Below, piece by piece: positions 27,087 to 64,000 of a DNA stretch of 64,000 nt (position 1 is the first letter of the stretch; each line of letters opens with the position of its first letter). The translations under genes were made by a program, and so were the position numbers. Source of the stretch: Pelomyxa schiedti (lineage: Eukaryota > Protista > Evosea). The stretch lies in NCBI GenBank assembly GCA_020536535.1, contig JAHLWZ010000022.1, positions 62,001 through 126,000 on the forward strand, written 5' to 3'. A model generated the notes under the pieces. It was given only the letters and a program-made list of their open reading frames with translations, was not told where the DNA came from and ran no database searches.

Positions 27087-28863
27087 CTATGAGCTCAGAA
27101 ACACAACAGATTTGAGTTCTCGTTGATCTCGTACTGAAACTGCAGGCAAACAAGTGCCAGCAACAATCGGGCCCTCCTGTAAGTTGTGAGCACATAGGCA
27201 GGGATGCAAACTACACACCTGCCAAAATGTCGACATAGTTGCCCTATTGAAAGGTACTTTTGGTGGATCCCAGACATGAACAATAGGTGTGTTTGACAAG
27301 TTAGCAAGCAAGATTATGTAGCACATTTCTTCATGCAGCTTGTGGAGTGTGTCTGCCACGTCCTTGTGACCAGAGCAAATTTGAAGAAACTTACTGCCCT
27401 TGAGGTGATTTTTGGAGAGCTCCTTAATTTTAAACAGTTGCAGGTGATTCCTTCGCATGTACTCATAAATAAAGCTTTCAGCCAATTCGTCACGTGTTTC
27501 ACTGGTTGCCAGGGGTGAGAACACTTCTTTTTTGAGACCGTCAATTTGAAGGGTTATGAGTGTTTCAGTTGCTTTGAAAATTTGTAGGCAAAAACCGCTC
27601 TGCTTTGACGGAATATTACATTGAGTTAATGAGAGCTTGTCATAAACGAAATTGGCGAACATCTGTACTATAGTTGGGGCTATATGAAGTTCGAGATAAA
27701 GGTACATTGTCCCGAAACTCTTTGTATCTAGAAATGATTTCATGTAGCAGAGGAAAACCATTGGTCAAGGAAGGTGCCTCGCCTATAACAGGACAGAGGG
27801 GAGTAGCCTCTGAGGGCCTAGATTCCAATTCGGCTACCTTACGTTGTAGTTCCCAGATTTGCTGTATGGAGTGAGTAAAGATTTTCTTCTAGATGGGAGC
27901 AACCTTATTCTTTAACCGCTCTTCCTGTCTAAGTTGGGATATTGTCACCTCAGACTCCACCTGGTTCTGATTGTTGCAACAGGCAGAAGCGGTATAGTTT
28001 TGTGAAGTGAGTGAGCGTTTGCTAATATTGTGGCATGCTTCCTCCATCTGCCTACATATTTCCGACAAGTTCTGAATGTCCTGGGCGGTTTTCTCCAGCT
28101 CAACTTCTTTGGTGGAGCAATCGCCCTCCCTTGTTATGCACGCGTCCTCTCGCTTACGGCACTCCTCCTCCGCTCGTTGCAGCGCAGCGTCCCTTTCCTT
28201 GAATTCCTCTTCACTCCGTTGCAACACAGTGTCCCGTTCCCTGAACGCATCTTCACTCCTTTGCAGCTGAGCTTCCCTTTTCCTAAACTCCTCCTCACTC
28301 CTCTGTAGCTCCGCCTCCCTTTTCCTGAGCTCGGCTTCCTCCAGTTGCAGCTGAGCCTCCTTTTGCCTGAGCTGCTCCGCAGTATGCGCCAGAGCAAGTC
28401 TTTCGCGGTCCCCCTCTTCCGTGCCGCAGCCACCGTGCCCGTGGTGCTGCTGGTGCTGGTGCTGGTGCTGCTGCTGCTGCTCCTCTTCGGAACTCCCCCT
28501 TCGGCTATGCGAGGCGTGCCTTGCATCGCCTGCCGAATGGCCCTCGCTATCAACCGGGTCCGCGCGTTTGATAACTACCACGACGCTTTTGGGGGCCGCG
28601 CGTGACGGCGACGTTGACGTGGCCGAGCTTCCCCCGCCGGTGACGTAGGTTGTGGTTGTGGTTGTGGTTGTACATGATGATGTACATGTAGGCGGCGAGG
28701 CTGGTTGTGGTGCCCCCGACCGGGCCGTTGTTGTTGCGCCTTTCCTGCGTATGAGTTCCTCCTGGGCCTTCTCTTTATCTCGGGAAGAAAGTTTCTTCCT
28801 AGCAAGTTTGCTGTCATTTTCACCTGTTGGCCCACTGTTGGTGCTTCGACTGCGCAGGTTCAT
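27087..28863 (-). CDS. Coiled-coil protein with C-terminal GIL1/IRKI-, MIEAP- or GrpE-like domain (paralogue A)
   Basis: 14-aa coiled-coil repeats (EAELQRSEEEFRKR). Helical domain NGFPLLHEIISRYKEFRD-MFANFVYDKL. Spliced C-terminus LANLSNTPIVHVWDPPKVPFNRATMSTFWQ-EGPIVAGTCLPAVSVRDQRELKSVVFL*. Confidence 0.7.
28170..28370 (-). repeat. Intragenic 42-bp (14-aa) tandem repeat encoding coiled coil
   Basis: About 4-5 imperfect units: KEAQLQLEEAELRK / REAELQRSEEEFRK / REAQLQRSEDAFRE / RDTVLQRSEEEFKE / RDAALQRAEEECRK. Confidence 0.8.
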
Positions 28864-28936
28864 CGTTTGTATTTTTGCACAGAGAATAATAAAATAACAA
28901 AGTTTTTCTTTTTTGTGTGTAGCCAGCTCAACTTGG

Positions 28937-30842
28937 CTACCATCTAGGTTTTACAAGAACAGTGGCTTTGAGCTCCCGGTGGTCGCCAGTGAAAACAGCT
29001 GGCAAAACGACCAGACTTGCAAGGTAGACCTTTGTGGGGTTGTTCAGGTCCTCTTCTTGCTGAAATAAAATTAGTCACACGTTCAAACAAGATGAAGTAT
29101 CCGCATACTGTGTAGAATTTCTCCATTGTGGTTTTATCAAATTGAGTTCCAACTCCACTCCAAACATGCGTGATTTCGGTATTTGAAATGTGAACCAAAA
29201 TCATCATATTCAGAGCTGACTCGATAATTCGAGACACATCACGGTAGTCTGTTTTGAGGCCGCCGTAATATTGCATATTCAGCACTCGCCCAACCTCACG
29301 AACCATGAGGGGGATGTCAAACAGGTTCTTGTAGTTTCGTCTATAATACTCCATCAGAAAGTTCTGTGTATATGAGTCGAGTGCAGTAAGAAGAAATGCT
29401 CCGGCCACTCTTCTCTGGATATTCTGGATTTCTTTCACCACAAAGTCCTCACTGCTATGAAAAAGCTGGCAACAGAATTGCGCTTGCGCCTCTGGTGTCT
29501 GGTAACTGCGATACAATGGTAGCTTGTCCCATACAAAATTTGCCAACTCCTTCGCGGAAGTCAAGGAAATATGAGAAGCAGAGACAAACTGTATCCCGAA
29601 ATTCTTTGTAGGCTCTCAGAATCTCATGTAAAAGTGGAAAACCGTTGGTTATGGAGGCAGCAGCGCCTGGAACAAGCGGAACTGTTGTCTCTCTGAGACG
29701 CTTTTCAAGCTCAGAAACTTTTTGTTCCAAGTCCCAGTGAGCCTTTGAGTGTGAATTAAGAGGAAAAAAAAAAGGGGGTGGAAATTGACCTTATTTTTTT
29801 GGCGTACTTCATCCTCCAGTTTTGCTTTCTCGATTTCAAATGTTGTTATCTAATCGCGAATGAGGGGATTTCAGAGAAATGAAAAATAGACCTGCTGACG
29901 GGCAGTCCCCAGCTGTACTTTGAGTTCTTTTGTTCTAGAGAGTTCTTCCAAGAAGGAATTATGTTGACTCAATCTTCCAACTTGAAGCTGCATACTATCC
30001 ACCAGTTGTTTCAAGAGTTGAGGCGGTGCAGGGGTTTGTTCTGCCTGTTTCAACTGAGCGTCTTTCTGTCGGAGGCTCTCCTCGGTTTTTTTAAGAACCA
30101 ACTCCCTCGATGCGCACATACATTCTCTCTGCTTTAACATTTCTTCCCTTTCACTCATTGATGCTTCTTTTCTTGTAATAGTTTCTTCTCGATTACGAAG
30201 GTCGGCCTCCTTTTCCTTATTCTCATCCACTCCTGAACCCGGAGCTGCATCTTTTCTTACAAAATGCTCTTCTATCAAAGATGCATATATTTGATTTTGT
30301 TCTTCCAGTCTCCGTTCTTGATCTTGGAATGTAGATACCTCACCATTCAGTTTGAGACAGAATGTCTCGAGCACGGAGCGTCTTTCATCCAGAGATTGGA
30401 TTAAATCCTTCAGCAGTTTCTCCTGCAAGTCTAATTGTGACTGGCGGTCAATGCCCACTTGCTGTTGCGCTTTGAGAGTTTGTACTTGAGAGAGCAATTC
30501 GGTCTTCTCTTTTTCAAGGGACTGTATTTGTTGGTCTTTGAGGCGGAACTCTCCCTGATATGCTGCCCAACACCGCTCGTTTGCCTCCGCAGTTGCTCTG
30601 GAAAGTATTGCCTGCCTTTCGCTATTGTTCAGCTGTCTCACGTGCTCCAGCTGTCTTGTTTCTGCCTTAACTTGCTCCTGGAGCCTGGAAAGAGTGCTCA
30701 TCCGTTCCTCTATTTGGAGGGCCAGGTTATTGCTCAAGACCGTTCTAGGGTCGATTTCCATCACAGTACTTACACTGCCTGTCGGTACTTGGTGTGCAAC
30801 AACCGACGAGGAACCAGTAATGCCCGGCAATGACCCCGACAT
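28937..30842 (-). CDS. Coiled-coil protein with C-terminal GIL1/IRKI-, MIEAP- or GrpE-like domain (paralogue B)
   Basis: Long coiled coil; NGFPLLHEILRAYKEFRD-ELANFVWDKL with the same intron position as paralogue A. Spliced C-terminus VHISNTEITHVWSGVGTQFDKTTMEKFYT-QEEDLNNPTKVYLASLVVLPAVFTGDHRELKATVLVKPRW*. Confidence 0.7.
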
Positions 30843-31011
30843 ACCCTTTTTTTTTGTTTATTTGGTCTTTGGTGTCAACCCAACGGCACCTAAGTTAAGA
30901 ACCAACTAGCTCATGTCCAACTTGGCTTTCAAAATTCCTGGCAGTACTTTGGTGGGTAGGTGGGACAACCAAAAAGCAGTAAAAAAAACAAAAACACCCG
31001 ATAAAACCAAA
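30843..31011. promoter_or_regulatory. Putative bidirectional promoter between paralogue B and the Hsp70-vWA gene
   Basis: About 170-bp spacer between divergent ATGs, with A/T tracts next to both starts. No specific motif was identified. Confidence 0.4.
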
Positions 31012-33744
31012 ATGGCGGCCTCCACCCCCGCAAGTTCGACAACACCCACCAGCAGCTCCTGGAGTAAATACGCAGTCATATGCGCTGTTGACTTCGGAAC
31101 AGCGCGAACTGGGTTTGCGTGGCTGTACACCCAGAATCCAGGGGAGGTGTATGACAACCCGCCATGGCCTCAGACTCCAGGGGGTTACCCAAAGACTTCC
31201 ACCGAGATCATACTTACCAAAGACACGCACGAGGTTGTTGCGTTTGGATTCGCTGCTCGTAACCAGATGGCATCGATGAACGACGCCGCGGCGGCGAAGG
31301 TTTTGCNNNNNNNNNNNNNNNNNNNNNNNNNNNNNNNNNNNNNNNNNNNNNNNNNNNNNNNNNNNNNNNNNNNNNNNNNNNNNNNNNNNNNNNNNNNNNN
31401 NNNNNNTACCCAAAGACTTCCACCGAGATCATACTTACCAAAGACACGCACGAGGTTGTTGCGTTTGGATTCGCTGCTCGTAACCAGATGGCATCGATGA
31501 ACGACGCCGCGGCGGCGAAGGTTTTGCACTTCTCCAAGTTTAAGATGTTTCTGGACCCAAATTCGGCCAGAGCTGTGCAGGTAAAAGCATCAAACTGTGA
31601 TGAAACTTTGCCACTGGTCGAAGTCATTTCAAAGGTGCTGGAGACTGTCAAAAAGGAGGCATTGAAGGTATTTGCGTCGCAAGGAAGAACCCTTGTAGCA
31701 AATTCAATTTTGTGGGTTCTCACTGTTCCTGCAATCTGGGATTCCGCTGCTAAGACCATTATGACGGAGGCTGCTCAAAGGGCTGGCTACGGGACAGATA
31801 ACGTAATGCTAGCACTGGAACCAGAGGCTGCTTCACTCTATTGCATGTTTAAGTCAACGCTGCCTACGCAGTTTCATAGACCAGGAACGAGGTATATCAT
31901 AATTGATGCCGGCGGCGGTACTGTAGATATTACAGTTCATGAGATTCAATCGGATTTATCAGTTCATGAACTATTGCCGGCTTCTGGTGGTGCTTGGGGT
32001 TCAACATATGTAGATGACGGCATGTTGAGGCTAATTGAAGAGATTTTTGGGCAGACTGCAATTGCTGCAGCACGTAAGTTTCCTGATTGGGTAGAAGTTC
32101 TGGAGAAGATAGAGTCAAATAAAATGAGTTGTACGCCAGAATCAGTTGCTGAAGGCGCTCTCAGGAACTTGGATTTTGCTCTAGTGACAGAAGTTTTGAA
32201 GGGTACCACAATTAAAGACTGCATCGCCAGGTTTAATACTTCAAAACCTGGCATGAATCTCACCTGTCGTGGATCTTCTACTGTCCGGATTTCCTCCAAA
32301 ATAATCAGTGACATTATTACTCCGTTGGCCAAAAAAGCAGCCGACCATGTTGCCACACTCCTCGAATCTGTGGATGTTTCACTTATTCTCCTTGTTGGTG
32401 GATTCAGTGAAAGCCCAATTTATCAAAAGATTTTCAGGGATCGATTCGCAACTGACACGAGGCTCGTTATTATTCCACAGAGGCCAGGCTTTGCCGTACT
32501 TTTTGGAGCTGTCCTATTTGGACTCAATCCAGGAGTAATATCCAGCAGATCATCAATGTATACATATGGAATAGATATGATGGAACTGTGGAACTCAGAC
32601 AAACATGGCTCGCGCCCGAAAATTGTAGCGGACGGGAAGAACTACTGTGGGAATGTGTTTGATATATTCATCATGGCCGGGCAACCTGTTGACCTGGTAA
32701 GTCAGGTCAGACGAGTATATACTCCAGTAAGTCCAGACCAGGCGGAAGTAGAACTTTGTGTCTATAGAAGCAAAAATAAGAGTCCCAAATTCACAAACGA
32801 GGAGGGAGTGAAATATGTTGGAGTTCTTTCGTTACCTCTTTCTGATATTGGAAGACCAATTGCTGACAGGCAAGTTGAGGTCTTAATGAAGTTTGGAGGA
32901 ACCAATATAACTGTTTCGGCAATACACAAAAATAGTGGGGAACTAGTCAATGCACAGTACCGGGAATACTTGAGTGAGTATTTATTTTCTACATCAAGGA
33001 AATTAAATATGGTGACATATACCAGATGACGCTGAACTACCCCAAAAACCAGTAGCAACTAGTCCCTATTCCATTGATCTATGTTTTGCAATGGTGTGTA
33101 TTCTGTGTCTTGAAAGTACCCTTTCTCACCTACCAAAGGATTGCACCGGTTCTATGTCAAGCTGGATAACTCGAACGAAGGAGGAAGTTGTGTCTATTGC
33201 AGGGCAAATACGGTCGCGATTTGCCAAGTCCAGTCTGCGAATTGCCTTTATTGGCTACCGCGATCACTGCGACACTCCCATTCATGCTATACACCCCTTC
33301 AACGAGGATGCCGGCAGCATGAAAATATTTCTAGAAGCAGTGAAAGCCACGGGGGGCGGAGACACCCCAGAAGACGTACTCGGAGCACTGATGGCTTGCT
33401 CTCAGCAGAAATGGACTTCTTCAGCCCGAGTGCTGGTCCACATTGGAGACGCCCCGTGCCACGGCACAATGTACCACTCGTGCGGCGACGACTCGTACCC
33501 GGACGGAGACCCCAATGGCCTGACCCATGACTTTGTGCTGCGTAAGCTGGCCGCGTTGAAGATAGACTACTACTTCATGAAGTTGAACAACAGCACCGAC
33601 CAGATGGCGAACATTTACAGCAACACGTACAAGGCAGTGTCTGGGAGGCCCATACACATGATCGACATCGGGTCCAACGTAGCAGCACTTCTGCCAACCG
33701 TCGTGGAGTGTGTTGTAAAGTCCATCACCAAACTGAGCCAGTAA
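31012..33744 (+). CDS. HSPA12-type atypical Hsp70 fused to C-terminal vWA domain
   Basis: AVDFGTARTGFAW, WVLTVPAIW, LALEPEAASLYC, IIDAGGGTVD, SGGAWGSTYVD and LVGGFSES are HSPA12 hallmarks. Two short introns then join DLCFAM-DCTGSM (MIDAS), YRDH, ATGGGDTPED and HIGDAPCHG, a vWA of the VwkA type. Confidence 0.9.
31186..31527. other. Assembly gap (100 N, 31307-31406) flanked by an identical 121-bp duplication
   Basis: 31186-31306 is identical to 31407-31527. Collapsing the copies restores a continuous Hsp70 frame. Confidence 0.9.
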
Positions 33745-34179
33745 CAACTGTAATTTTCGGATAAAAAAAACCTCAAATACGGCGAAAACAAAGAAATTCA
33801 AATGAGTGCATAGGTGCTGCTCCCTTCACCGTTTCTCCAACCCCCCACCTTCGAACCATGCCAAGTTTTAGAATGGAAATCAAGTTGTGTTGTTTAGCTG
33901 AAGGGTTAGATTATGGCGATCAGATCAAATCCGCGAAAAAAGAACTTGTTCTTATCCCATACTTCTTCAAGAACAGATGCACAGGGATGTTGTGTTGGAG
34001 GAGCAAGTGAAGAAACAACATAAACAAAAGTTTTTTTTCTTTGTTTCCCCAGGGTGGCGGCACTGACTGGCTTATGTACATGACCACCCTGAAGCGGTAA
34101 TCTGACTTGACTGCAAAGTGCATCATCAGAGGTCTTTATTTTATTCAGCCAAGTGAGGGGGGTCTGGTAGTAAAATAAG

Positions 34180-37100
34180 TTATGGTTGTTGAGCCATCGA
34201 CGTTGTGGTTGTGGTTGTGGTTGTGGTTTGAGTTGGGGATCTGCAAATTGCCTCAGTCAGAGTGAGTCTAGAATGACTTGGTGGTGCTAAAGCTAATCTG
34301 TTAGGCTCCTGGTTATCAGGGCTTGTGGGGGCTTCCATAATGTTGGGCATCAATGAAACATTTTGTGGTGGCACACTGGCAATCATTTTGAGAGTTTCTG
34401 CCAGTTGGGGTATCTCTGTGTGGCGGTGCTGTCCAACATTGCCTGCCAGTTCCATCATTTTCTCCTCTGCCCCCCAGGCACCAATACTGATGCAGTAAAT
34501 TGGTACCTTTCCTTGAAACTCTTTGAAGATTGCACAGAGCTCTTTTTTCCCCGTCTTGTCACCTCCATCAGAGACAACAATGAGCTGTGCGGAAAATTCG
34601 TCCCTTTTTGGAGACTGTTAAGACGGAAGCTTGAGAGGGAAAATTAATACCAATTTGTACTTCGTAGTACTTCTTGGCACTTGAGCAATGCAGGAGAAAA
34701 CGCTGTTGAACTCCCAAAAGGGCCGGAAACCTTTGATTCAAATTCGAGTGCTTCCTCACGTGTACACGGTGGTATTACATGATCCACTCCTCCAGAGAAG
34801 AAGACGAAACTGTACAAATCATTTGGATTGTCTCTTCGCTGGATATAAGTCTTCACACTGATCACAAGTGCTTCCCACGCGTTACTATAGCCGGTTCCCC
34901 AAGAGTACAAAGCACTCTTCATAGAGGAGGACCTGTCAAGACAAAAAACTACGTGCAGGTCTTGTGGGGTCCCGTGCAAGTGGCTGAACAGGTGCCCATC
35001 TTCCGAAGCATAACCCACTTGTTCCAGAAAAGTGGTCTTTCTGCCTTTGTTGAGAGGACACGGGGGATGCCACAGCGGAAGTAAACACATGACTCTGTCT
35101 CTATGGGAATTGCAACAGGCGTGAGGGCACTGTTTGAACGATGGAATCTGCTCTGGTGCGCACGGATCCACAAAGTTGATGAAGTTCCAGTATTTTTCGT
35201 GGGTGAGTTCATCCTTTGGAGAGTCTGGATCTGGGTTGTACTGCACAACGGCGTGTCGTAGGCCTTCTTCTCCCCTTGAGCAGGTGGTTTTGGACTTGCA
35301 TGGGAGTACGTGGATATGCCCTCTTCCACCTTCAACACAGAATGAATCGCACATTTTTGCCCATCCCACTTCTCCCGCGCGGTATACTTGCCCGTGTAGC
35401 TCAATATCGTTTTCTGTTGAAACAAAGTGTGCATGTATCATTTTGCCATGACGGCCGGTATCGTGTTGTCCCTTGTGCCCAAACTTAAGCTGACAGTTGT
35501 AGCCACAGGCTGGGCACACCTCAAGGCAGAAATGATGAGTGGAGTGCTCACTGTGTCTATGACTGTCACCGTGTGTCAATTTTCCTTCAGGTATCATTGC
35601 ACAACAAGGTAGTTTTCTTTGCTCCGGTACAGTGATTGTATCGTACTCGATGTTCGGCTCCTTCACCGAAACACGGAATGTAACTGGTCTTCGAATGTAC
35701 TTTACCTCGCAACAGCCATCTTGGTTGCAGATCTCTGGACATCTGTGAGCGTTGGCACATAAGTGGGTATTTGCGGTGGAGTCTTCATTTCCATGAAAGT
35801 GGTGGGAGGCGCATGTATTCCGACAGTTTTGGGAGAAGAAACAAGCATGCAAGCACTTATTCATCCCGCAGTCGTGTTGTTTGTGGCTGTCACAGGAAAG
35901 TTTGCAGCGTCGTGCGCAAGGTTGCCCTCCAGGACCAATTGCCGAACAGGGATCTCCACACGTGTGACTTCGAGCACTGCACTTGCAGCCACCGTCGTGG
36001 TTAAGTGGGAGACTGCAGAATTTGTTGCAACCATCTCTGTCTAAGAGTTGGCAGGTTTTATTGCAGGTATGACCCTGCCGGCAGTCGTGCGCTCCACTAT
36101 GGGCAGACGTGTAGAAACATTGGGTTTTTTTCCCAAGCTGATTGCAGTTAACACAGTGGTCTTCGCAGTGGTGAGACCCACAGCAGTCGTGCTCGCCCGA
36201 ATGTTGACGTAGAAGCAAGCAAAGCAATCCACAGTTATCACAAGTATTCGTGCAAAGTGCTAGTGCATCCAGTTGTTGCATGGCACGTGCGACTTCGGTC
36301 TGGAATGCAATAACATTTTGGTCTTCTCTCCATTCCGCCTTTATGTTGGAACTGATCCACAGTTTTACATGGTTCTTGCGGCTTTCTATAACAAGCTCCA
36401 CAAACTTCTTGAATTGATCACGTCCGCTTTGGACTGATTGTTTGATTTTTGGAAAGTACTTTTCAAATTGAGCCTTTAACTCGTTTCGTATTCGAAGTAA
36501 ATCTTGTTCGTCTGTTGTGTCCAGATTAAAATGCGAGATGGGAATTCTTAAGCCAGAAAGCTCGACTTCGTCACAAGAAATGACCTCTCTGGTCAGGAAA
36601 TTGGTGAGCTGTCCAACAGGACTGGTGACTTTGGTTCTCCCATAAGATATGGCTGAAGGAAGCCCTTTTTGAAGCTTTTTAATAGCAATTTTCACATCCT
36701 GACCGACAAGAGAAGACCAGTCCTTCAAATTCAGCTTGGCTAATAACAACTTCATCTCATCTACGAACTCGGCGCCCAGGAACTGCGATCTTTGTTCCTG
36801 AAGGAGTGTCTTGCACCTTTCCAAGCTTTCATTATATCCAGGGGTACCGAAGTGGTGACACAGTATAAACTCAAACTGTCCGGAAAACATGCATGTAAGA
36901 AAATTATTTCCCTGGTTCTGCGAGATGAGCTCACGGAATTTGGACTCAAACTCCGCCCCTAAGCTGCTTATGTCCCTTTCCTCAACATCTCTTGCCATCA
37001 GAGCAAAGAACCCTCTGAAGAGTTTTTCATCACCGTGCACTAGTCCAATGCCCCGCTGAAACTTTTGGAACATCTGCTCAGTTTCCCGGTCAACATTCAA

Positions 37101-40100
37101 TGCAGTCCGGAAAAGAGTCAAGTTTGAGACAGCGGCATTTAAAACTGAAAGGAGAAGGTCTTCTTCCATGGAACGCTCCAAGGAGCACAGACCCTCAAAA
37201 TCCAAGGCAACAATTAACCGATCAGACTTTTCACGCACACTCATCCAGCAGCCGTTTGTGCACCTTCCTCCCGAAATATCGAAGAGAACACCCAAGAGGT
37301 GGTTGAGAACATAACTTTTCCCAGTGCTTTGCTTGCCCATGGATGTGACAACAAACACTGGCTTTCTTGTGCAGGATGCAAAAACTGACTCGAGCAGTCC
37401 AAATGAAATTTCATCAGCGACATCATTCTGGTCTTTGTTCCCAATTGTGCGTGGCTTCTGGACAACACCATTATCTATAATCTCCAAGCAGTTATTGTCG
37501 ACTCGAGCAATCTGGATTGGAACTTGAGATATAAGAGTCTTGAGCCACCTTCCACAACCAGTCGGCTCCATACAGTCCGAGTCCGACTCGTTCCATCCCT
37601 CCTCAATGCCACAAGTGACGTGATTCGAAAAGAATTCATCGGCCCTCTCCCTACCAACCTTGAATAGGCCAGAGAGCAAGGTCTGTCGTTTTGCAAGGCA
37701 CTTTGATACCAGGGTGCTTATCTCAGGTGTCAGTGTTGGTACCACTACCATCAGCTTGCACGGTTTGCAATGCTCATTTGTGTCACAAACTGCTGTGATT
37801 GGAAATTTGTCAAACATCAAGTAAAGGTAATCCAGGATAGGACGAGAAAGTTGTTGATTTGAAACTATCTTGGAGCTCTGCATTCTGAAATCGGTGCGTT
37901 TCACCTGAGCTTCCAACACCACTGAAGAAATGCGGTTCTCACTGGCATGATATTGAACTAAATGTTTCTCCAACTTGCCGGCAGTACAAAAATCCACAAG
38001 GATCGTGGAGCCAAGAAGCTGTGGATTGAGCAAGTTGGTGTCACAGTGGAGTTCAGTGCTATTGCTCGTGAAACTCCTGACAGAAATTCGAGCACTCTCA
38101 CATGATCCAGAAACCTCCATTTGTGAAAGCGTCACAAAACAGTCTCGATCAATAATTAAAGGCCTTCCATTGACTTTCAAGTCACAAATTTTGTTATGCT
38201 CGAAGTCATAGAGCTTAGTTGTCGTTGGAAATAGCAGCATCACCTTGTGTCCTCCTGGAAGAGGGATAACTTCAGTCAACTTGGAGAAGGTTGGGTCAAA
38301 AGAGAAAGAACCCAAAGTTTGGTAATTATTGTATGAGTCAGTGAACATCAGGGCATGAACACTGGCAATTGGTGGAGGATATGCCACAGCAAACACCCTG
38401 GTGGATTCACAGAAATTAAAAATACAACCAGATGCCCGCCTCTTCAGTGTAAAAAAGGAGTCATGGTGCCCCTCCTGACGAATAGAAATGGCCAAATTTG
38501 GATCGCCCTTGGATCTCTCTGTTCCCACAAGCATGATGTTATTTGAAGGCAATAAAAACCCACTCAGAACAGTTGCCAGACGAGATGAAAAACGCCGGGG
38601 TTCCGCGAAAGATTCCCTGCAAGATTCAGCTGTCCTCTCTGCCCCCATTTCTATCACCGTGATTTCTAGGTGCGCAGCTTCCTCTTGTTCGAAGAGAACA
38701 CCAAGCTCAACTTTCCGGCCACTGTGGTCCAGGCTTAAGTTTGTGATGCGGGATTGTTTGGTGTTGGTGGATGGAAGTTCCTTTGCAATTGCTTTATCAA
38801 GTTGAGAAGAAACCTCTTTTGACCAAGCTGCATAATAGTGAGAAGGGTTGCTCAACACATCAACCTTGATCTTTTTGACAAGGGCTTCAATTCGTTGCTG
38901 CAGGCTATTGGGTGCCAGGGTATCTGTTGCCTCCAGTGTTCCAGCTGACGAAATGTGGGATCCTGTCATAGACCTTAACCATCTTCCTGGTTGCATCCAA
39001 GATGATTCTGACTTTCCAAGAGAGTTGTTTTCCAACAGGGAGGAAAGGTCTTTATCGTAGGTGTCCAAGCAAGTGGGGACAAGATCGTCACTGAACTCTT
39101 TTGGTAAAGAATGGAACATTGGCGACTGCAACAATTCCTTGGGCAAGTCACAGCTAAGTTTCATCCTCATGTGTAGCACGACTTGTACCGCAATCCCGTC
39201 AAGTCGTCTTTTTTTCCAACCTTCAAACTCACGCACGAGACTGTGGTTACAAAGATCCAGCAGTTGAAACTTTTGTTCCCAGGTGAGACTCTCTGTGTTA
39301 CACTCACTGCCCTGAAGGAGGGCCAACAGCTGCTGTTTGAAGGAAGAAAGATCGAAGTTGCCAGTGACAGGCACAAGCTCCGATTTTGAAGGGACTTCCT
39401 GCCAACTTACAAACCCCACTGTGTGACTGCCCTTGCACATCATCCAGGGGGTTTTATTTGGAAGAGGGAGAGAGCAAGTAAAACCCTTCTGGACCTCGCA
39501 TCGCTCTTGGATACTGTTCTCTTGAACCACACAGTGTATTAGCCTTGATTCCTGGGATATTGGGCTCTGCTGGTGAAGTTCTTCAATCATTCTCCCGGAC
39601 AAGACAAAGAAAATCCTGTCGCACAGGGTGTAAAAAAAGCGCAGTAAGAGGCATGCAGGGTCAGAAATCTGAACGAGGGAGAAGCTTTCTGCTGCTGGAA
39701 TAAAAACGAGGATCATCACCCCTATGCCCTGCATGTGGGAGCTTGGCGCAAAACTAGTGATAAACGCGTGAATCCCGGGTTGCTCCACGGGGAGTTTTGT
39801 GATGGAAGAAAAAGCACCCGTTCGCATCAAGAACTGCGTCACCGTTGGCGGATCCCCAAAGAACCCGAGTGTGATACTGCACTTGGATCTATCCAGCTTG
39901 TCGAAGTCGATAAACTCACCATCTGTTATGCAAGCCTCCCCCAGAATTCGGTTGGCAAGAGAGAGCACATTTTGTCCCAGAAGCTGAACCTTGTGCACAG
40001 ACCCCTCTACCATGGTAACCAGGTGGTGGGGTTCATGGCTCACTTGTTCCAACATGCATGGAAAGGCACTGGCCGCAGGCAAAGGGGAAGGTGAAGGCGA

Positions 40101-40806
40101 AGGGTTGGAAGAGACAGAAAGTGGTGGAGGGGCTTGGAATAATTCTTTCTTCACGTTCTCCAACACGTTGACAGCTGTTTTTTTTGGCATCTTCACGGAC
40201 TGTATCAGCCTTTCAACATTAAAAGGAAGGAGGTCTTCCAAGTCCTGGAATCCTGCGTTGACCAGCGCAGGAGGGAAATCTTTCAACTTAGAATAAGGGG
40301 TACCCCCTGGGTCACTTATTGGCACTGCTCGCCTTTGCAATTTGAGTGTCCACCCAAGTTTGCAGCCTGAGTCCTGGAAAATTGCCGGAGGAGCCTCCCT
40401 CAACCCAGCCAATGTGCACGGCTTGTCACACATCCTCAATGCTTTGCACACAGACTCTTCAGCATCACACAATCCAATATCTTTTGCAAGTGAGAAACAC
40501 GAAAAAAGAGGGGGAGAGGAAAAAAAAGGCAACATTCTTTCAAATGACCAAAAACATCACAAAATACAAGACTCGTCTATAGGCGCACAGGAAAGCACAA
40601 CCTTTCAACTTGAGGTGAAGATCGGTGACAGACAAGGCCTGACGCACCGACAAGTAGAGCGACGCGTCAACGTCGTCCTTGTTCTCGTCCAGCTGCCGCA
40701 GGAACTCAGTAGGTGGTGTTCCGTCCATATCGAAATTAAGGGCATCGAGCGCACTCACGTCAATCCCCGCGCCGACCAGTGTCTCCCTGACGCTGTGCCC
40801 TGACAT
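34180..40806 (-). CDS. Giant (over 2100 aa) GBP/VLIG/RHD3-type GTPase with N-terminal SAM/HhH-like helical domains, Cys/His-rich repeat region and C-terminal vWA
   Basis: G1 MGKQSTGKS, G2 RCT, G3 DFEG, G4-like RD. Repeated C..C...C.L...H.G.H.C units. vWA: VVFCLDRSSSM...VVSDG...ISIG. One 121-bp intron (40481-40601), a 5.8-kb exon and a short intron near 34.6 kb. Confidence 0.85.
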
Positions 40807-42322: not shown

Positions 42323-45300
42323 TCAGTGGTTCTCTCGTAGCGGGAAGAGCTCGCGTGTGAGGACGCCCTCTTCTCTCTTTTTGTCCAACCAGTGTCCGCA
42401 CGGGAATTTCACTGCGGGCTTATCTCCAACTGTGATTGTGATGCTGTCCAGGAACCAGCCTGGTCCAGGACCCTGTGTGATTGGTGGGATTAGTGCGGTT
42501 TAGTTTGCGTGAGTGTTGCGGAATGAATTTAGAGCTTAGAGCTGAGGATAAATGGAGATTTACGCACAGTGTTGTCGTGCCACACGCGCAGTTTAGAGAG
42601 TGCACCAATGTCCGGGAGCTCCAAGGTGAAGTTGTCTGTGTGCCCCTTCTCGAACAAGTTACCTTTCCCTACAAGAGGGCAAACACCGCTGCTCATCTCT
42701 GGGGGAGTTCCAAAAAGCTCAATGAATACGTTTGCGTCGGTACCGGCATGGGAGAGCTTTCCGGTAACCACTGAAACCTAAAGAAATTTCAATCACGTTG
42801 TGGGGATAAAATCTATTGTGGAGGATACCTGATAGTTAAGATAGGGCAGACTGGGTACCCCGTCTTCAGTTGAAGCCATTATTTGCCGATCAATCTGCTT
42901 ATCTCCTCCATGTTTATCAAACCACTTGCCACAGATAAAGAAGCATTTTTCAAGTGCATTGCCTTCCTCTTTCTCCTTTGTGACGATAACTTTGTCCAGG
43001 AACCAGGCTATGAAAGGGTCACTTAAAAATTACAAGTGAATTCTCCTACCAGAGTTAAATCCGTGGCCGTTGTGACCTATCCTCATATACAACAGTGGGC
43101 CCAAGTCATAGCACTCAAAAACGAAGACATCCTTGCTCCCTCTTTCAAACGATTTGCGTTTTGCAGGGAGCACATATTTACTGGAGTCTCCTAATTTGCC
43201 AAAAAGATGGATGTATACATCGGCATCCGTGCCTGCTCCGCGACAGTTTCCGGTTTGAACTTCGATCACATAACGCAGCTGTGGTGGAAAATAAGTTGAA
43301 TGTTACTGTTTTTGGAAAACATACCATCTCAGCACCGGCAGGAGTGGAAGTGCTTAACTCCCTCTCGATCCTGTGATCTCCTTCATGAACGGAGAACCAC
43401 TGATTGCAGTTGAAGGTAGTAACTACAGACTCTTCTCCTTCTTCTGAAACCATTACTTTCTCCAAAAACCAAGCAGCACCAAATCCGGCATTGTCGTGGC
43501 CAATAGTTACTCTGTTGATCACACCAAGGTCAACACATTCCACACTAAATTTGTCAGTCTTGCCACGCTCGAAACAACTACTCTTCCCCTCCAGCCATCT
43601 TCGTGAAGAGGAGCCGCCAGTGCCATGTAGCATAGCGTAAACATGGGCATCAGTTCCAGCACCACGACACTTTCCAGTTACGACTGTAATTATGTAATGC
43701 TTCATTGGAGCACAGGGTACACCGTCTTCGTTTCTTGCTGGCAACTCTCGGACAATTTGCTTATCATCTTCATCATCTGCAAGCCATCTGCCACACAGGA
43801 AGTACCACTCTTTTCCGCCTTTCAGCATTTCAGATACAATGACTTTGTCCAAGAACCAGCCGGCATTCAACCCGCTGTTATCGTGACCAATAATAACTTT
43901 ATGCAATTCACCCAGGTCTTGGCTTTCCACCTCAAATTTGTTGGTGGAGTTCCTATCAAATCCAGATCTTCCCTCCAATATCTTCTTGCCAGTTGTAGCT
44001 TTTCCTCCCTCTCCCACTATTTCAATAAACACTTTAGCATCAGTTCCACCACCTCTTCTATCTCCAGTGACAACTGTAACTTGGTATTGTTTGAGAGGCT
44101 TGGTTGGATTAACGTCAGACATGCTAGCAGGTAGCTCTCTCTCAGTGAAGTGATCTTCCTCGTCACGGGCAAACCACCTGCCACAGGGGAAGTGCCAAAT
44201 TTTCCCCGAGTCTTGCTCTCGAATAACAACCTTAAAATGTGTAAGCAAGAAAGATTGTTTAAAGGGATAGGATACTTTTTCCAAGTACCAGGCAGCATTT
44301 ACACCACTGTTATCGTGTCCAATTATGATTTTCTGTAGTTCACCCAAGTCAACACACTCAAATTGAAAGCTGTCCATGTGATTCCTCTCAAAAAGATTGC
44401 CCTTGCCCTCAAGTTTCCTCTTCTCTGAGGTTCCTTTTTCACCAAATATTTCCAAAAATACGTTGGCATCTGTTCCAGCACCCCTAATGTTGCCAGTATG
44501 CACATTTATGATGTAAATTCTTAACGGAGAACATGATTCTCCATCTTGAGCAAGTGCTTGAAGTTCTCTAGAAATTTCGTGATCTCCTTTACTCTTATCC
44601 AGCCATTGACCACACAGGAACCACCACTTCTTACCATGCGCTATTTCTTCTTCCACAATAACCTACAAAATTAAAATGTGAGGTACATAGTATAATTTCA
44701 AAGTCTAACCTTATCCAAAAACCACCCTGCGTTTATTCCAAAATTGTCGTGCCATATTTTCAGTGACTTCAGTTCACCCAAGTAGTCGCACTCAATCCCG
44801 AATGTGTCCGATTTCCCTCGTTCAAAGAGATTACCTGCGGCATCTAGTCTCTTTTCTCCACTTGTGCTCTTGTACCCAGTGATATCGACATAGACCCGGG
44901 CGTCGGTACCAGCCCCTCGGCGGTTACCAGTAATTGTAGTTATACGATATCGGTGAAAGGGTAGCGATGTAATGGCGTCGTTGGCAGAAGCAGGAAGTAC
45001 TCTTTCGATTAGCTTATCTTCTTTGCTCTTCGACAACCATTTCCCACAGAGGAAGTAGTAGGTTAAATGGGTTTCCTCCTCATGTATAATGACCTTGTCC
45101 AAGAACCAATCAGCTCCAACTCCTTTATTGTCATGTCCAATTGTAACTTGAACAAGCTTGCCTAAGTCGACACATTCAACCCCAAAATCATCAGATTTGT
45201 TTCTCTCAAAAGTGTTTCCAGGGGCATCCAAGCTGCGCACACCACTGTCACCATTCTCACCATGAATGTTTATGTAGACATTTGCATCTGTGCCAGCACC

Positions 45301-47169
45301 ACGTTTATCTCCAGTTACTGTTGTAATCCTGTAATGTCGTAGAGCTGCACAACTCCACTTTGAACCATCAGAAGCTGCAAGTAATTGTCTCTCAGTCAAG
45401 CCATCTTCCATGTTCTTTGACAGCCATCTTCCACAAGGGAAAGTCCAGGACTTTACACTATCTTCTTCTTTCACGACAATATGGTCCAAGAACCAGGAAC
45501 TACTCAATCCCTTGCCATCGTGGCCAACCACACAGCGTTGAAGATGTCCTAAATCTTGGCATTCAAACCCAAATTCGTCTGTTTTGTTCCTCTCGAAGCA
45601 ATTTCCAGGTTTATCCAGTTTTTTGTTTCCACTTTCACCCTTCTCGCCAAAAACATTTATGTATACATTTGCATCCGTTCCTAGTAGAGTTACATGAGTT
45701 CTCAAAAGTATTATTCAAGTGAAAGCAACCTGCACCACGTCTGTCCCCAGTCTTCACCGTAACGCGGTAACGTTTTGAGGTGGCCGCAGCACCATCAGTA
45801 GTGTCACGGTCGCTAGCAGTTAATTCTCTCTCCCATGGTGACGGATCTCCCAACCAGTCACCACATGCAAAGAACCGTTCACTGACTGCTGGTGTTTCCA
45901 CACAACGCACGGTAACTTTCTCCAAGAACCACGGTGAAGGTGGATCAGTTTGTGCAACAGCCACCTTAACTCCCTGAAGCTCTCCCACGTGTTTAGTTAT
46001 AACACGGAAAATGTCATCACGCCCACGGGAAAATACGCCTTCTGCTGCACTTTCCAAGGGGAGGGCAGGTGAAGTCAATTTGGAACCCACCAATACACAA
46101 GTAACGCGGGATGTTGTAGTGGCACCTTTGCGGTCTCCAGTTTTTGTCCGAATCATGTACGTGACGTCACCCTCCAACACGACCGCCTGGGCGGCAGCTG
46201 CTGAGGAATCAGTCCTGAAGTAATTAGTAAACAAAATAAGAAAGTGACACAGAATACACACCCAGCTTCAGCAACTCGTTGCTTATCATTTAATAATTTT
46301 CCTATAGGAAAGCTCATTTGAGCTCCAGGCTCACCAGAGAGGGTTATTACAGCTACAGTCACTCGATCAAGCTTCCACCCATCAGCCTTTCCTGACTCAG
46401 GTCCACGCTCAACCCTTACCCGTGTAACAGCTCCAGGGTCTCTGGTTCTTACCCTGAAAGTTTTTGAAGATCCACGTGGGAATCCATCCTTTGATTCCAC
46501 TTCCATTGGTGGTGGTGGCGCAACAGCACCAGACCCAATAAACTGTACTTTAACCTTCTGAGAGTTCATTCCAGCACCTTCCTCGTCTGCAGTAAGGAAA
46601 GTGACGTCGAATTGCATCATTGCACTTCCAGAAGCAGCAAATGCAGCAGCACTGGCAGGAGTGGAAGCCGAGCTTACAAAACATAGCCGGAGAGTGAGAG
46701 TGCCATGCTCAACATCAATAAGTTTGTGGGTGGATTCTACAGTGGCCCCTACAGCCAGAGCGGAAGTATCCAGTGGAAAACGGCCAAGTGAATCTATTCG
46801 TGTTGTAATGAGAAAAGAAGACAGGGGTGTTATTTACCGTCCCACACAAGGTCTTCATCGAAGACACGAAATTCCACACACGGTTGCTTCTTAGGAGCAG
46901 CGAGCTTCAACTCAAAGTCTTGGTTCCACGTTGGCTCGAGAGTGTTTTTGATAACCTTGGTCCGTATTTTTTGCGACTTGTTAGACGCATCCGTGTACCG
47001 TATTTCCACGTAAGGGTCAGAACCCCCACCGGCATCTATTGGAACAAAGCGTAAAGTTTTAGCACGCACACTACCCACTAACAACAAACAATAAAGCGTA
47101 GATCTCGACAGTACCTTTGGCCACCAAGTTTGATGCGGAGACCACAGTAACGTACAGTGTCCCGGCCAT
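42323..47169 (-). CDS. C2 domain + about 10 tandem PLAT/LH2 domains (LOXHD1-like)
   Basis: N-terminal MAGTLYVTVVSASNLVAK-DAGGGSDPYV..KIRTKVIKNTLEPTWNQ..VFDEDL (C2). Ten Y.I.V.TG..RGAGTDA.V...F-ER...D.F...DLG.L..I.IGHDN.G...WFL-KV units, the first two divergent. Confidence 0.9.
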
Positions 47170-47345: not shown

Positions 47346-59858
<12,513 letters not shown>

Positions 59859-59976
59859 TCCGAGGTAAATTGTATGCACAACTTTCGAAGACGAGAGTGA
59901 CGGAGCTACGGGAAAAAAACTTTTGTTTTGGAAAAGGCAACGACAATCACAACACGAGATCGGGCAGGCAACCTAA

Positions 59977-61964
<1,988 letters not shown>

Positions 61965-62254
61965 ACTTTGCTTGTGGGAGTGCGCTGAAGAGACTGGACT
62001 TTACTAGTACAGTCTTTCTTTTTACTCTTCTCAGGTGAGCTTCTCAGGCATTCCCTCAGAGACCTGTCATCCTGGGAGAAGTGATCAGTTGGTTATTTCC
62101 CCTGTCTTGGTTCTGTGAGGTTTCTGTTTTGAGCCGGATGAACCAAGTTAGTCAGAAGGTACTTTTTTCGGCCGGTTGTTATTACCTGTTTGGTAACCCC
62201 TAACCCAAGTAACTTGTCACGATTTTTTACTCTTGTTACAAACAAAAGACCGCC

Positions 62255-64000
62255 ATGTCGGGGCACAGCGTCAGGGATATCCTGGTAGGCGCGGGGATCG
62301 ACGTAAGTGCGCTCGATGCCCTTAATTTCGATATGGACGAAACTCCAGTGGCAGCGTTCCTGCAACAGCTGGACGAGAACAAGGACTACGTTGACGCGTC
62401 GCTGTATTCCTCGGTGTGTTCCACCTTGTCGCGCTTCGCCGCTTCTGTCAACGATCTTCACCTCAAGTTGCAAGGTTGTTGGGTTTTCCTGGTACCTTGG
62501 ACTCACTTGCAAAAGAAATTGGATTGGGTGAAGCTGAAGAGTCTGTGTGCAAAGCCTTGAGGATGGGTGAAAAGCCGTGCACATTGGTTGGATTGAGGGA
62601 GGCTCCTTTGGCAATTTTCCAGGACTCAGGCTGTAAACTTGGGTGGAGTCTCAAATTGCAAAGGCGAGCAGTGCCAAGCAGTGACCCAGGGGGTACCCCT
62701 TGTTCTAAGTTGAAGGGTTTTCCCCCTGTGCTGTTCAAGGCGGGATTCCAGGACTTGGAAGACCTCCTTCCTTTTAATGCTGAAACCTTGATACAATCAG
62801 TGAAGATGCCAAAAAAAACAGCTGTGAATGTGTTAGAGAATGCAAAGAACATATTATTGCCATCCCCTGCATCATCAACCGCCTTTCCATGCATGTTGGA
62901 ACAAGTGAGCAATGAACCCCACCACCTGATGACACTGGTACAGTTGGAGGAGTCAGTGCACAAAGTTCAGCTTCTGGGACAAAATGTGCTCTCTCTTGCC
63001 AACAAAATTCTGGGAGAGCCTTGTACAGCAGATGGTGAGTTTATCGACTTCGACAAGCTGGATAGATCCAGGTGTATTATACTCGGATTCTTTGGGGATC
63101 TGCAAACTGTGACGCAGTTCTTGATGCGAACAGGTGCCTTTTCTCCTGTCACGGAACTCCCTGTCAAACAAACCGGGATTCACGCGTTTATCACTCGTTT
63201 TGCACCAAACTCCCGTATGCAGGGCATAGGGGTGATGATCCTCGTTTTTATTCCAGCAGCAGAAAGCTTTTCCAATGTTCAAATTTCTGACCCTGCATGC
63301 TACTTCCTGCGATTTTATTACAGCCTGTGCGACAGGATTTTCTTTGTCTTGTCCGGGAGAATGATTGAAGAACTCCAACAGCAGAGCCCCATCTCCCAGG
63401 AATCAAGGCTAATACAATGTGAGATTCAAGAGAACAGTATCCAAGAGCGATGCGAGATACAGAAGGGTTTTACTTGCTCTCTCCCCCCTCCAAATAAAGC
63501 CCCCTGGATGATGTGCAAGGGCAGTCACACAGTGGGGTTTGTAAATTGGGAGGAAGTCTCCTCAAAAACAGAGTTTGTGCCTGCCACTGGCAACATTGAT
63601 CTTTCTTCCTTCAAACAGCAACTGTTGTCCATCCTTAATGGCCGTGATTTGTACACCGATAACCTCACTTTTGAGCAAAAGTTTCAGCTGCTTAATTTTT
63701 GTAACCACTTTGCCATGTGTGAGTTTGAAGGTTGGAAACAAAGACGACTTAATTGGATAATGGGGCAGGTGGAGATACGAATGAGGACGCACCTTGGCTC
63801 CTACTTGCCCAAGGAATGGTTGCAGCCGCCAATGTCCAAAAATGCTTTACCGCGAGAGATCAGTGAGGATATCGTACCCACCTGCTTGGATAAATACGCT
63901 CATGAGGTTGCAGCCCTATTGGAACAAAACTCTCTTGGGAAGTCAGTGTCGGCAACAAGTCGAGAATCGGGCTGGTTTCACCGTATAAGGAGTGTTTCAG
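62255..64000 (+). CDS. Second, inverted paralogue of the giant GTPase-vWA gene (5' part; runs off window)
   Basis: Starts MSGHSVRDILVGAGIDVSALDALNFDMD like copy 1. A 41-bp intron (62475-62515) lies at the homologous position. The frame is then open to the window end and aligns with the 40480-38950 region. Confidence 0.9.

Follow-up and report, generated by a model that had tools for sequence, protein, structure and literature searches.

A linked HSPA12-type Hsp70 and candidate GrpE-fold partner genes in Pelomyxa schiedti, with related pairs in bacteria and other protists

Four neighbouring genes occupy positions 27087 to 40806 of a 64,000-nucleotide stretch of the Pelomyxa schiedti genome (the window; contig JAHLWZ010000022.1, positions 62,001 to 126,000, here called C22). 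Two of them, A and B, lie on the minus strand. They are followed by a plus-strand gene for an HSPA12-type Hsp70 fused to a von Willebrand factor A (vWA) domain, and by a minus-strand gene for a giant GTPase that also ends in a vWA domain. The initial annotation had read these genes, with spacers of about 70, 170 and 430 bp, as one immunity or conflict cluster. We found that all four genes are real and stand in that order, with spacers of 73, 169 and 435 bp. A search of the published assembly (52.37 Mb in 5,337 contigs; PMC8887013) and of more distant genomes suggests that the HSPA12-type gene and the A/B family are conserved partners, and that the giant GTPase most likely adjoins them as a member of a different expanded family.

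The HSPA12-vWA gene (31012–33744, plus strand) encodes a protein of 804 amino acids (P0001) with Pfam matches to HSP70 and VWA_4. Its sequence in the window is interrupted at 31307–31527 by a false gap, which consists of 100 N (31307–31406) and a 121-nt duplicate of 31186–31306. The possibility that this scaffolding gap marks a genuine break or lost sequence was ruled out because its flanks overlap exactly by 121 nt and because the DNA contig X4/15 bridges it, skipping 221 letters. The sequence is thus continuous and in frame. The RNA runs X2 and X3, both from one sample, show splicing of two introns: a 52-nt intron (32974–33025) whose removal brings the Hsp70 and vWA parts together, and an in-frame 45-nt intron (33094–33138) within the strand of the vWA metal ion-dependent adhesion site (MIDAS). 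Collapsing the gap and removing both introns gives exactly the deposited P0001. Although the Hsp70 open reading frame (ORF) stops ahead of the vWA domain, the spliced RNA contigs rule out two separate genes. In a different RNA contig, X1/3, a 74-nt GT-AG intron of the minus strand (32762–32835) has been spliced out and the sense intron is retained. This antisense spliced RNA crosses the 3′ half of the HSPA12-vWA gene and is possibly a long 3′ extension of the convergent GTPase gene.

The nucleotide-binding motifs of Hsp70 were located in the P0001 model, and the vWA domain occupies the place of the canonical Hsp70 lid. The best named matches of P0001 are HSPA12 proteins (E down to 1e-82). It is 31–36% identical to animal HSPA12 over the whole Hsp70 part and the family motifs are common to both, whereas DnaK and HscA models score 20–40 bits on HSPA12-type Hsp70s against cut-offs above 600. 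By its motifs and family-wide similarity, P0001 can be classed as an Hsp70 of the HSPA12 type and not of the DnaK type. The same fusion occurs in the environmental relatives P0002 and P0003 (52–53% identity over the Hsp70 part), in a second Pelomyxa gene (P0105) and in a telomere-bearing low-GC contig (L118); a metagenome scan with an alignment of close HSPA12-vWA proteins returned zero loci. Three further Pelomyxa HSPA12 paralogs bear a different vWA subtype within one ORF, and sequence comparison therefore suggests that HSPA12 probably gained a vWA domain at least twice.

Gene A (27087–28863, minus strand) is predicted to encode 549 amino acids in exons 28863–27904, 27861–27706, 27662–27219 and 27176–27087. 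Its product has a low-complexity N-terminus, a coiled coil and a MIEAP/GIL1-like C-terminal domain (27087–27662, minus strand) composed of a helical part and a small beta domain, for which a GrpE-type fold is likely. Gene B (28937–30842, minus strand) is predicted to encode 575 amino acids in exons 30842–29892, 29849–29790, 29742–29590, 29549–29109 and 29059–28937. The open model of A thus has four exons with 42–43-nt introns and that of B has five; the introns of both genes are all GT-AG and 40–49 nt long. ATG-started ORFs at 27761 and 29564 were rejected as gene starts because they read into introns. B is a paralog of A (about 30% identity within the domain), and its model is 77% identical to the deposited Pelo_18444 (P0149), the model of a second copy of B on contig C1856. 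We searched the spliced A and B models exon by exon and used the deposited P0001, P0121 (the GTPase) and P0149 in whole-protein searches. A word-based search with the last ORF of A gave zero matches, and Pfam, including GrpE, MIEAP (PF16026) and GIL1_IRKI_C (PF24994), gave no match for A or B. The only route to the family was by way of genes adjoining HSPA12 paralogs, genes that share the A/B motif pattern. When a profile of these genes was run against 1.8 billion proteins, it found seven Pelomyxa proteins and one Joint Genome Institute (JGI) protein; two matches to repeat proteins were treated as noise.

Within Pelomyxa, the A/B domain follows HSPA12. Two copies lie on C22 and others on C804, C500 and C1856, every one of them inside an HSPA12 cluster; the remaining matches fall on three contigs outside the comparison of neighbourhoods, which did not extend to C2211, C2809, C2112 or to the outer flanks of the GTPase arrays. 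Two deposited models, P0152 and P0153, fuse the domain to HSPA12. In one environmental sample, the domain-bearing ortholog P0156 and the HSPA12-vWA ortholog P0003 stand on consecutive JGI contigs (_185835 and _185836) that share an exact 32-nt end overlap, which places them head-to-head, as in Pelomyxa. The divergent layout of B and HSPA12-vWA is the one found in JGI contigs L044/L042, and the 169-bp region between the two genes (30843–31011) is a candidate shared promoter.

The pairing extends well beyond Pelomyxa. Among 80 metagenomic loci picked by HSPA12 similarity alone, the best matches of a Pelomyxa-centred profile were genes adjoining HSPA12, and an iterated profile found an adjacent partner in 33 of the 49 loci whose flanks reached 1 kb or more. 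In bacteria, the partner is co-directional and downstream of the HSPA12-like gene. On contigs that read TAA/TAG as sense, which we infer to be from ciliates, the two genes are head-to-head. They are mostly tail-to-tail on 3-kb contigs of low GC content that bear telomeric repeats and are presumed to be nanochromosomes of rumen ciliates. The low-GC contigs of about 3 kb (L063, L071, L074, L090, L092, L123 and others) carry only HSPA12 and the partner, several of them with CCCCAAT telomeric repeats, and are apparently two-gene ciliate nanochromosomes.

Bacterial genome assemblies, mostly of filamentous cyanobacteria, Thiotrichaceae, Chloroflexota, Streptomyces and Myxococcota, supplied a held-out set of 22 HSPA12-like loci, which gave the same result. 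With a partner profile built from eukaryotes only, genes directly after the HSPA12-like gene took ranks 1–11 of 831 ORFs. With the pooled profile, a partner was found directly downstream in 19 of the 22 loci. Conversely, a profile without any Pelomyxa sequence ranked A and B first and second of the 908 ORFs in the window (E 0.0055 for the domain of A), and Pelomyxa and non-Pelomyxa partner profiles matched each other with a probability of 96% (E 4e-9). Thus, the initial proposal that GrpE-like proteins A and B are tied to the atypical Hsp70 is borne out by the linkage in Pelomyxa, the fusions, and the adjacency kept in bacteria and other protists.

Several points weigh against this conclusion. 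The iterated profile behind the 33 of 49 count includes those very sequences, many of the linked loci are related to one another, and two appear in both sets, so that the counts overstate independence. P0152 and P0153 are fusions in annotation models. The partner was not detected in 3 of the 22 bacterial-assembly loci, at four standard-code ciliate-like loci, or at two mollusc loci searched over 10-kb flanks, which says little in large genomes. RNA support for A is one contig at the 3′ end (27240–27358), and none of the RNA contigs lies on B. The layout of the pair nevertheless differs between distant lineages.

A quick tree of HSPA12 places the family in bacteria, ciliates, animals and Pelomyxa and gives neither donor nor direction. 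The HSPA12 genes of ciliates with genetic code 6 have very short branches, which fits a housekeeping role there. Four standard-code, gene-dense eukaryotic contigs (L052, L053, L057 and L073) carry an HSPA12 that groups with this code-6 clade and have no linked partner. The bacterial operons (L127–L147) come mostly from filamentous or multicellular hosts and have variable neighbours, among them an upstream 480–640-residue helical protein, a ClpB-like AAA protein, a second Hsp70, and dynamin-like, STAND-Schlafen, WD40 and vWA proteins. PADLOC returned zero matches for P0001, P0149, P0121 or one bacterial pair, and NCBIfam gave no family above cut-off for either component of the scanned pairs. 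The bacterial HSPA12-like plus GrpE-like operons look like an undescribed system in their own right.

The fold of the partner domain points to GrpE. An AlphaFold2 model of the P0149 domain (predicted local distance difference test, pLDDT, 83) is a helical bundle with a small beta domain and matches GrpE, MIEAP and GIL1. Foldseek placed GrpE at ranks 1–6 (best E 0.023). In both Foldseek and VIA-align, GrpE headed the lists whether the query was the whole domain or just its beta domain. With the beta domain as query, the four GrpE representatives occupied ranks 1–4 of 48,161 chains (best Z 5.3; root-mean-square deviation, rmsd, 2.9 Å over 55 residues). The pooled partner profile found human GrpEL1 as its best match among PDB sequences (E 0.018), aligned through characteristic beta-domain motifs. 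In the ESM Atlas, the best match of gene A was MIEAP (feature score 0.93). MIEAP and GIL1/IRKI were the nearest named families there, and the modelled domain had template modelling (TM) scores of 0.66 to MIEAP and 0.59 to GIL1/IRKI over about 190 residues, predicted models being compared on both sides. A Nostoc partner matched the same Atlas clusters as gene A (TM 0.72–0.81). The Pfam GrpE model weakly matched 3 of 32 family members (best E 0.018), and one member of the wider family matched MIEAP/GIL1_IRKI_C with an E of 0.073.

The GrpE scores are individually non-significant (Z below 8, E above 0.001), and no family member reached the Pfam GrpE cut-off; both facts count against the assignment. 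The whole-domain rmsd to GrpE is 9–15 Å, and the helical part thus departs from GrpE. Because four structure searches and one profile search agree despite these weak scores, we consider it likely, on the predicted models, that the C-terminal domain of A and B has a GrpE beta-domain fold that follows the coiled coil and the helical part. The A/B domain and MIEAP/GIL1_IRKI_C share the same predicted fold. Distinct matches to Pfam GrpE exist elsewhere in the P. schiedti genome.

The giant GTPase gene (34180–40806, minus strand) gives a model equal to the deposited P0121, with introns at 40601–40481 and 34650–34604. Its 2152 residues comprise a GTPase of the URGCP/GBP/RHD3 type, a Cys/His-rich region and a C-terminal vWA domain (VWA_2). 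Motifs resembling G1 to G4 are all present. The Pfam GBP model scores above its cut-off (23.2 versus 21.1), whereas URGCP_GTPase (41 versus 55 bits) and RHD3 fall below theirs. P0121 belongs to a family of 2,100–2,400-residue GTPase-Cys/His-rich-vWA proteins that has members in Agaricomycete fungi, a liverwort and a gregarine transcriptome as well as in Pelomyxa. P0121, P0123, P0125 and P0126 bear public names such as ‘E3 ubiquitin-protein ligase TRIP12’; Pfam lists only GTPase and vWA domains in them, and these names appear to be misannotations. As first described, both nucleoside triphosphatases (NTPases) of the locus end in a vWA domain with MIDAS-like motifs. The vWA of the GTPase has DRSSS with a later T and D, and that of the Hsp70 is a VWA_4 variant with DCTGS and a D at the usual T position. 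BLASTP found no significant similarity between the two, which are unrelated subtypes, and gave no support for a common origin. The vWA domain is common in the P. schiedti genome, with at least 38 matches.

The GTPase is probably not the fixed member of the locus that the initial annotation took it for. P. schiedti has at least 12 copies of the family, on contigs that lack HSPA12 matches except for C22, and a GTPase-family profile found nothing at 102 other HSPA12 loci, many of them short. Within 10 kb of the homologs in fungi and the liverwort, neither HSPA12 nor A/B genes occur; the liverwort gene adjoins an aspartic protease gene, and homologs form tandem arrays in Lactarius and Dentipellis (L045, L151), as in Pelomyxa (C505, C900). 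A second copy on C22, P0122, is 80% identical, inverted and about 21 kb away (window 62235–64000, continuing on C22 to about 130.7 kb). The 8 kb downstream of it, which had been singled out as a place to look, contain only unrelated genes and no HSPA12 or A/B gene. This duplicate had been called fast-diverging; its ratio of nonsynonymous to synonymous substitutions (dN/dS) is 0.46, with no region above 1. Because the family occurs elsewhere without HSPA12 and the other HSPA12 loci lack the family, the GTPase link is non-recurrent. Of the neighbourhood that was expected to recur elsewhere, the HSPA12/GrpE-like pair does so and the link to the GTPase-vWA gene does not.

Other genes of the window lie past the 5′ end of the GTPase gene. 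Just beyond it is a gene with at least six PLAT/LH2 domains (43178–45705, minus strand). A large many-exon gene at 53000–59950 (minus strand) resembles a PIKK/SMG1-type kinase by eye, and it is followed at about 60260–62000 by a gene that, also by eye, resembles a MYST-type acetyltransferase.

A second version of part of the locus lies on C1856 (L012, L023), where the 5′ part of A, B and the N-terminus of HSPA12 correspond to window positions 28373–31306 with about 82% nucleotide identity. Over the 121 nt flanking the false gap, the two versions become identical. The assembly contains one HSPA12 body, which the second version joins at the false gap, and the C1856 version represents a divergent haplotype or else a duplicate. 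A comparison of the versions gives a dN/dS of 0.40–0.62 for B and of 0.04 for the HSPA12 N-terminus. Positive selection is rejected because all regions tested have a pairwise dN/dS below 1. A constant HSPA12 core with a variable partner fits a role in conflict, though no dN/dS exceeds 1.

We compared the locus with systems already described. Like DnaK-GrpE and mortalin-GrpEL1, it links an Hsp70 ATPase gene to a coiled-coil protein that would end in a GrpE-type beta domain. Unlike those systems, the Hsp70 is of the HSPA12 type with a vWA domain in place of the lid, and the partner is 300–1500 residues long with a larger helical bundle. We noticed no J-domain gene, although no search was aimed at J-domains. 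P0001 shares the family motifs of HSPA12A/B, and the family is expanded in P. schiedti as in bivalves, but the C-terminal vWA fusion and the linked genes for GrpE-fold candidates set it apart. A 2026 review describes the function of HSPA12 as unknown and notes that no dedicated cytosolic GrpE isoform is retained in eukaryotes, where GrpE is taken to be organellar (PMC13580251). MIEAP/SPATA18 (PF16026) and plant GIL1/IRKI (PF24994) also combine a coiled coil with the same predicted C-terminal fold, whereas A and B have no Pfam sequence match; in the literature, we found no link of MIEAP, GIL1 or IRKI proteins to GrpE or HSPA12. The GTPase has the Pfam matches and all the G motifs of the VLIG/GVIN/URGCP and GBP/atlastin families, but its 2,100–2,400-residue Cys/His-rich-vWA subfamily is distinct and its URGCP score is under the cut-off. 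The DO-GTPase/GAP1-N2 conflict systems contain HSP70 and GrpE (Kaur et al., 2020, PMC7159879), and they share the theme of a GTPase with HSP70 and GrpE (and vWA) in multicellular bacteria. Those systems have a DO-GTPase (TRAFAC, with Glu in Walker B), GAP1 and FNIII/DnaJ, and occur in actinobacteria and firmicutes (PMC7159879). Here, the GTPase is of the URGCP/GBP/RHD3 type, the four genes have no Pfam match to FNIII or DnaJ, and the HSPA12 loci found in bacteria are mostly cyanobacterial or from Thiotrichaceae. In the literature searched, which left most subscription journals outside, we found no description of the HSPA12-MIEAP/GrpE-like pair.

Based on these results, we propose a model in which the working unit is an HSPA12-type Hsp70 with its own GrpE-fold partners, A and B, to which variable components are added; we consider this model somewhat better than an even bet. 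That HSPA12 and the partner act together functionally is highly likely. By analogy with DnaK-GrpE, A and B may dimerize through their coiled coils, as homodimers or heterodimers, and the C-terminal beta domain may dock on the nucleotide-binding domain of HSPA12. This docking would release ADP for ATP and reset a private ATP switch, apart from the housekeeping Hsp70 system. Nucleotide exchange, which rests on this analogy, is a reasonably probable activity for the partner. The fused vWA domain may replace the lid as a metal-dependent module for client binding or docking, and the variable N-termini of the partners may set where and on what the HSPA12 switch acts. A role of the unit in defence or conflict has a little under an even chance, and a role in stress, proteostasis or organelle quality control is only slightly less likely.

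A different reading unites the four genes in a single co-regulated, NTP-dependent defence module in which the GTPase-vWA protein is a sensor or effector beside the Hsp70 switch. Some bacterial and fungal findings point this way. A small TRAFAC GTPase gene is directly upstream of the pair in L054/L062, a dynamin-like gene directly follows the partner in Nostoc (L131), and 57% of the members of a Basidiomycota Atlas cluster with the partner fold carry MMR_HSR1. The vWA, AAA, STAND-Schlafen, WD40 and second Hsp70 genes of the bacterial loci, and the origin of most of these loci in filamentous or multicellular bacteria, are also reminiscent of the conflict systems of PMC7159879. In addition, the antisense spliced RNA over the 3′ half of HSPA12 may originate on the GTPase side. 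However, GTPases of the URGCP/GBP type are absent from the 102 other HSPA12 loci, HSPA12 contigs and GTPase contigs of Pelomyxa are disjoint save for C22, and the GTPase homologs stand alone or in tandem arrays of their own. In L042, the HSPA12-vWA ortholog is followed by a gene that does not resemble the GTPase family, the vWA domains of the Hsp70 and the GTPase belong to unrelated subtypes of a domain common in this genome, and PADLOC matched none of the three proteins scanned. We therefore regard a four-gene module as unlikely.

Unrelated expanded families could also come to lie side by side by chance when a genome is compact. This would fit the GTPase, given the short intergenic distances and the expansion of both NTPase families. 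For the HSPA12-partner pair it is contradicted by adjacency in three orientations across bacteria, two ciliate-like groups and amoebae, and by the held-out profile test; as an account of the locus it is very improbable. The partners might instead be clients or polymer-forming effectors, with the beta domain serving only as a docking tag for an HSPA12 that holds or disassembles coiled-coil assemblies. The helical part that departs from GrpE agrees with this, as do the number and variability of the partners, which are fused to spectrin repeats or long low-complexity regions, and the much faster divergence of B than of the HSPA12 N-terminus between the two versions of the locus. In GrpE, the beta domain and the preceding helix contact the nucleotide-binding domain of Hsp70. 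It is these that correspond to the conserved part of the partners, and most linked loci elsewhere have one partner per HSPA12 gene, as a cofactor would predict. A client or effector role is accordingly rather improbable in our view, and we continue to favour a dedicated cofactor of HSPA12.

In sum, a pair conserved in filamentous bacteria, ciliates and amoebae alike points to a probable candidate cofactor for HSPA12, and the MIEAP/GIL1 domain gains a concrete biochemical hypothesis. This permits a direct test, in which SPATA18 would be assayed for nucleotide exchange on HSPA12A/B, or the operon neighbour of a cyanobacterial HSPA12-like protein for exchange on that protein. For the question of defence versus stress, the bacterial operons also offer a tractable genetic system. 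More speculatively, HSPA12 across life, including human HSPA12A/B, may use its own GrpE-fold exchange factors, a family that would include MIEAP/SPATA18 and GIL1/IRKI. This would be an old, J-domain-independent ATP switch that is shared with multicellular bacteria and, much as in conflict systems, is combined there with GTPase, vWA, AAA and STAND components that vary.

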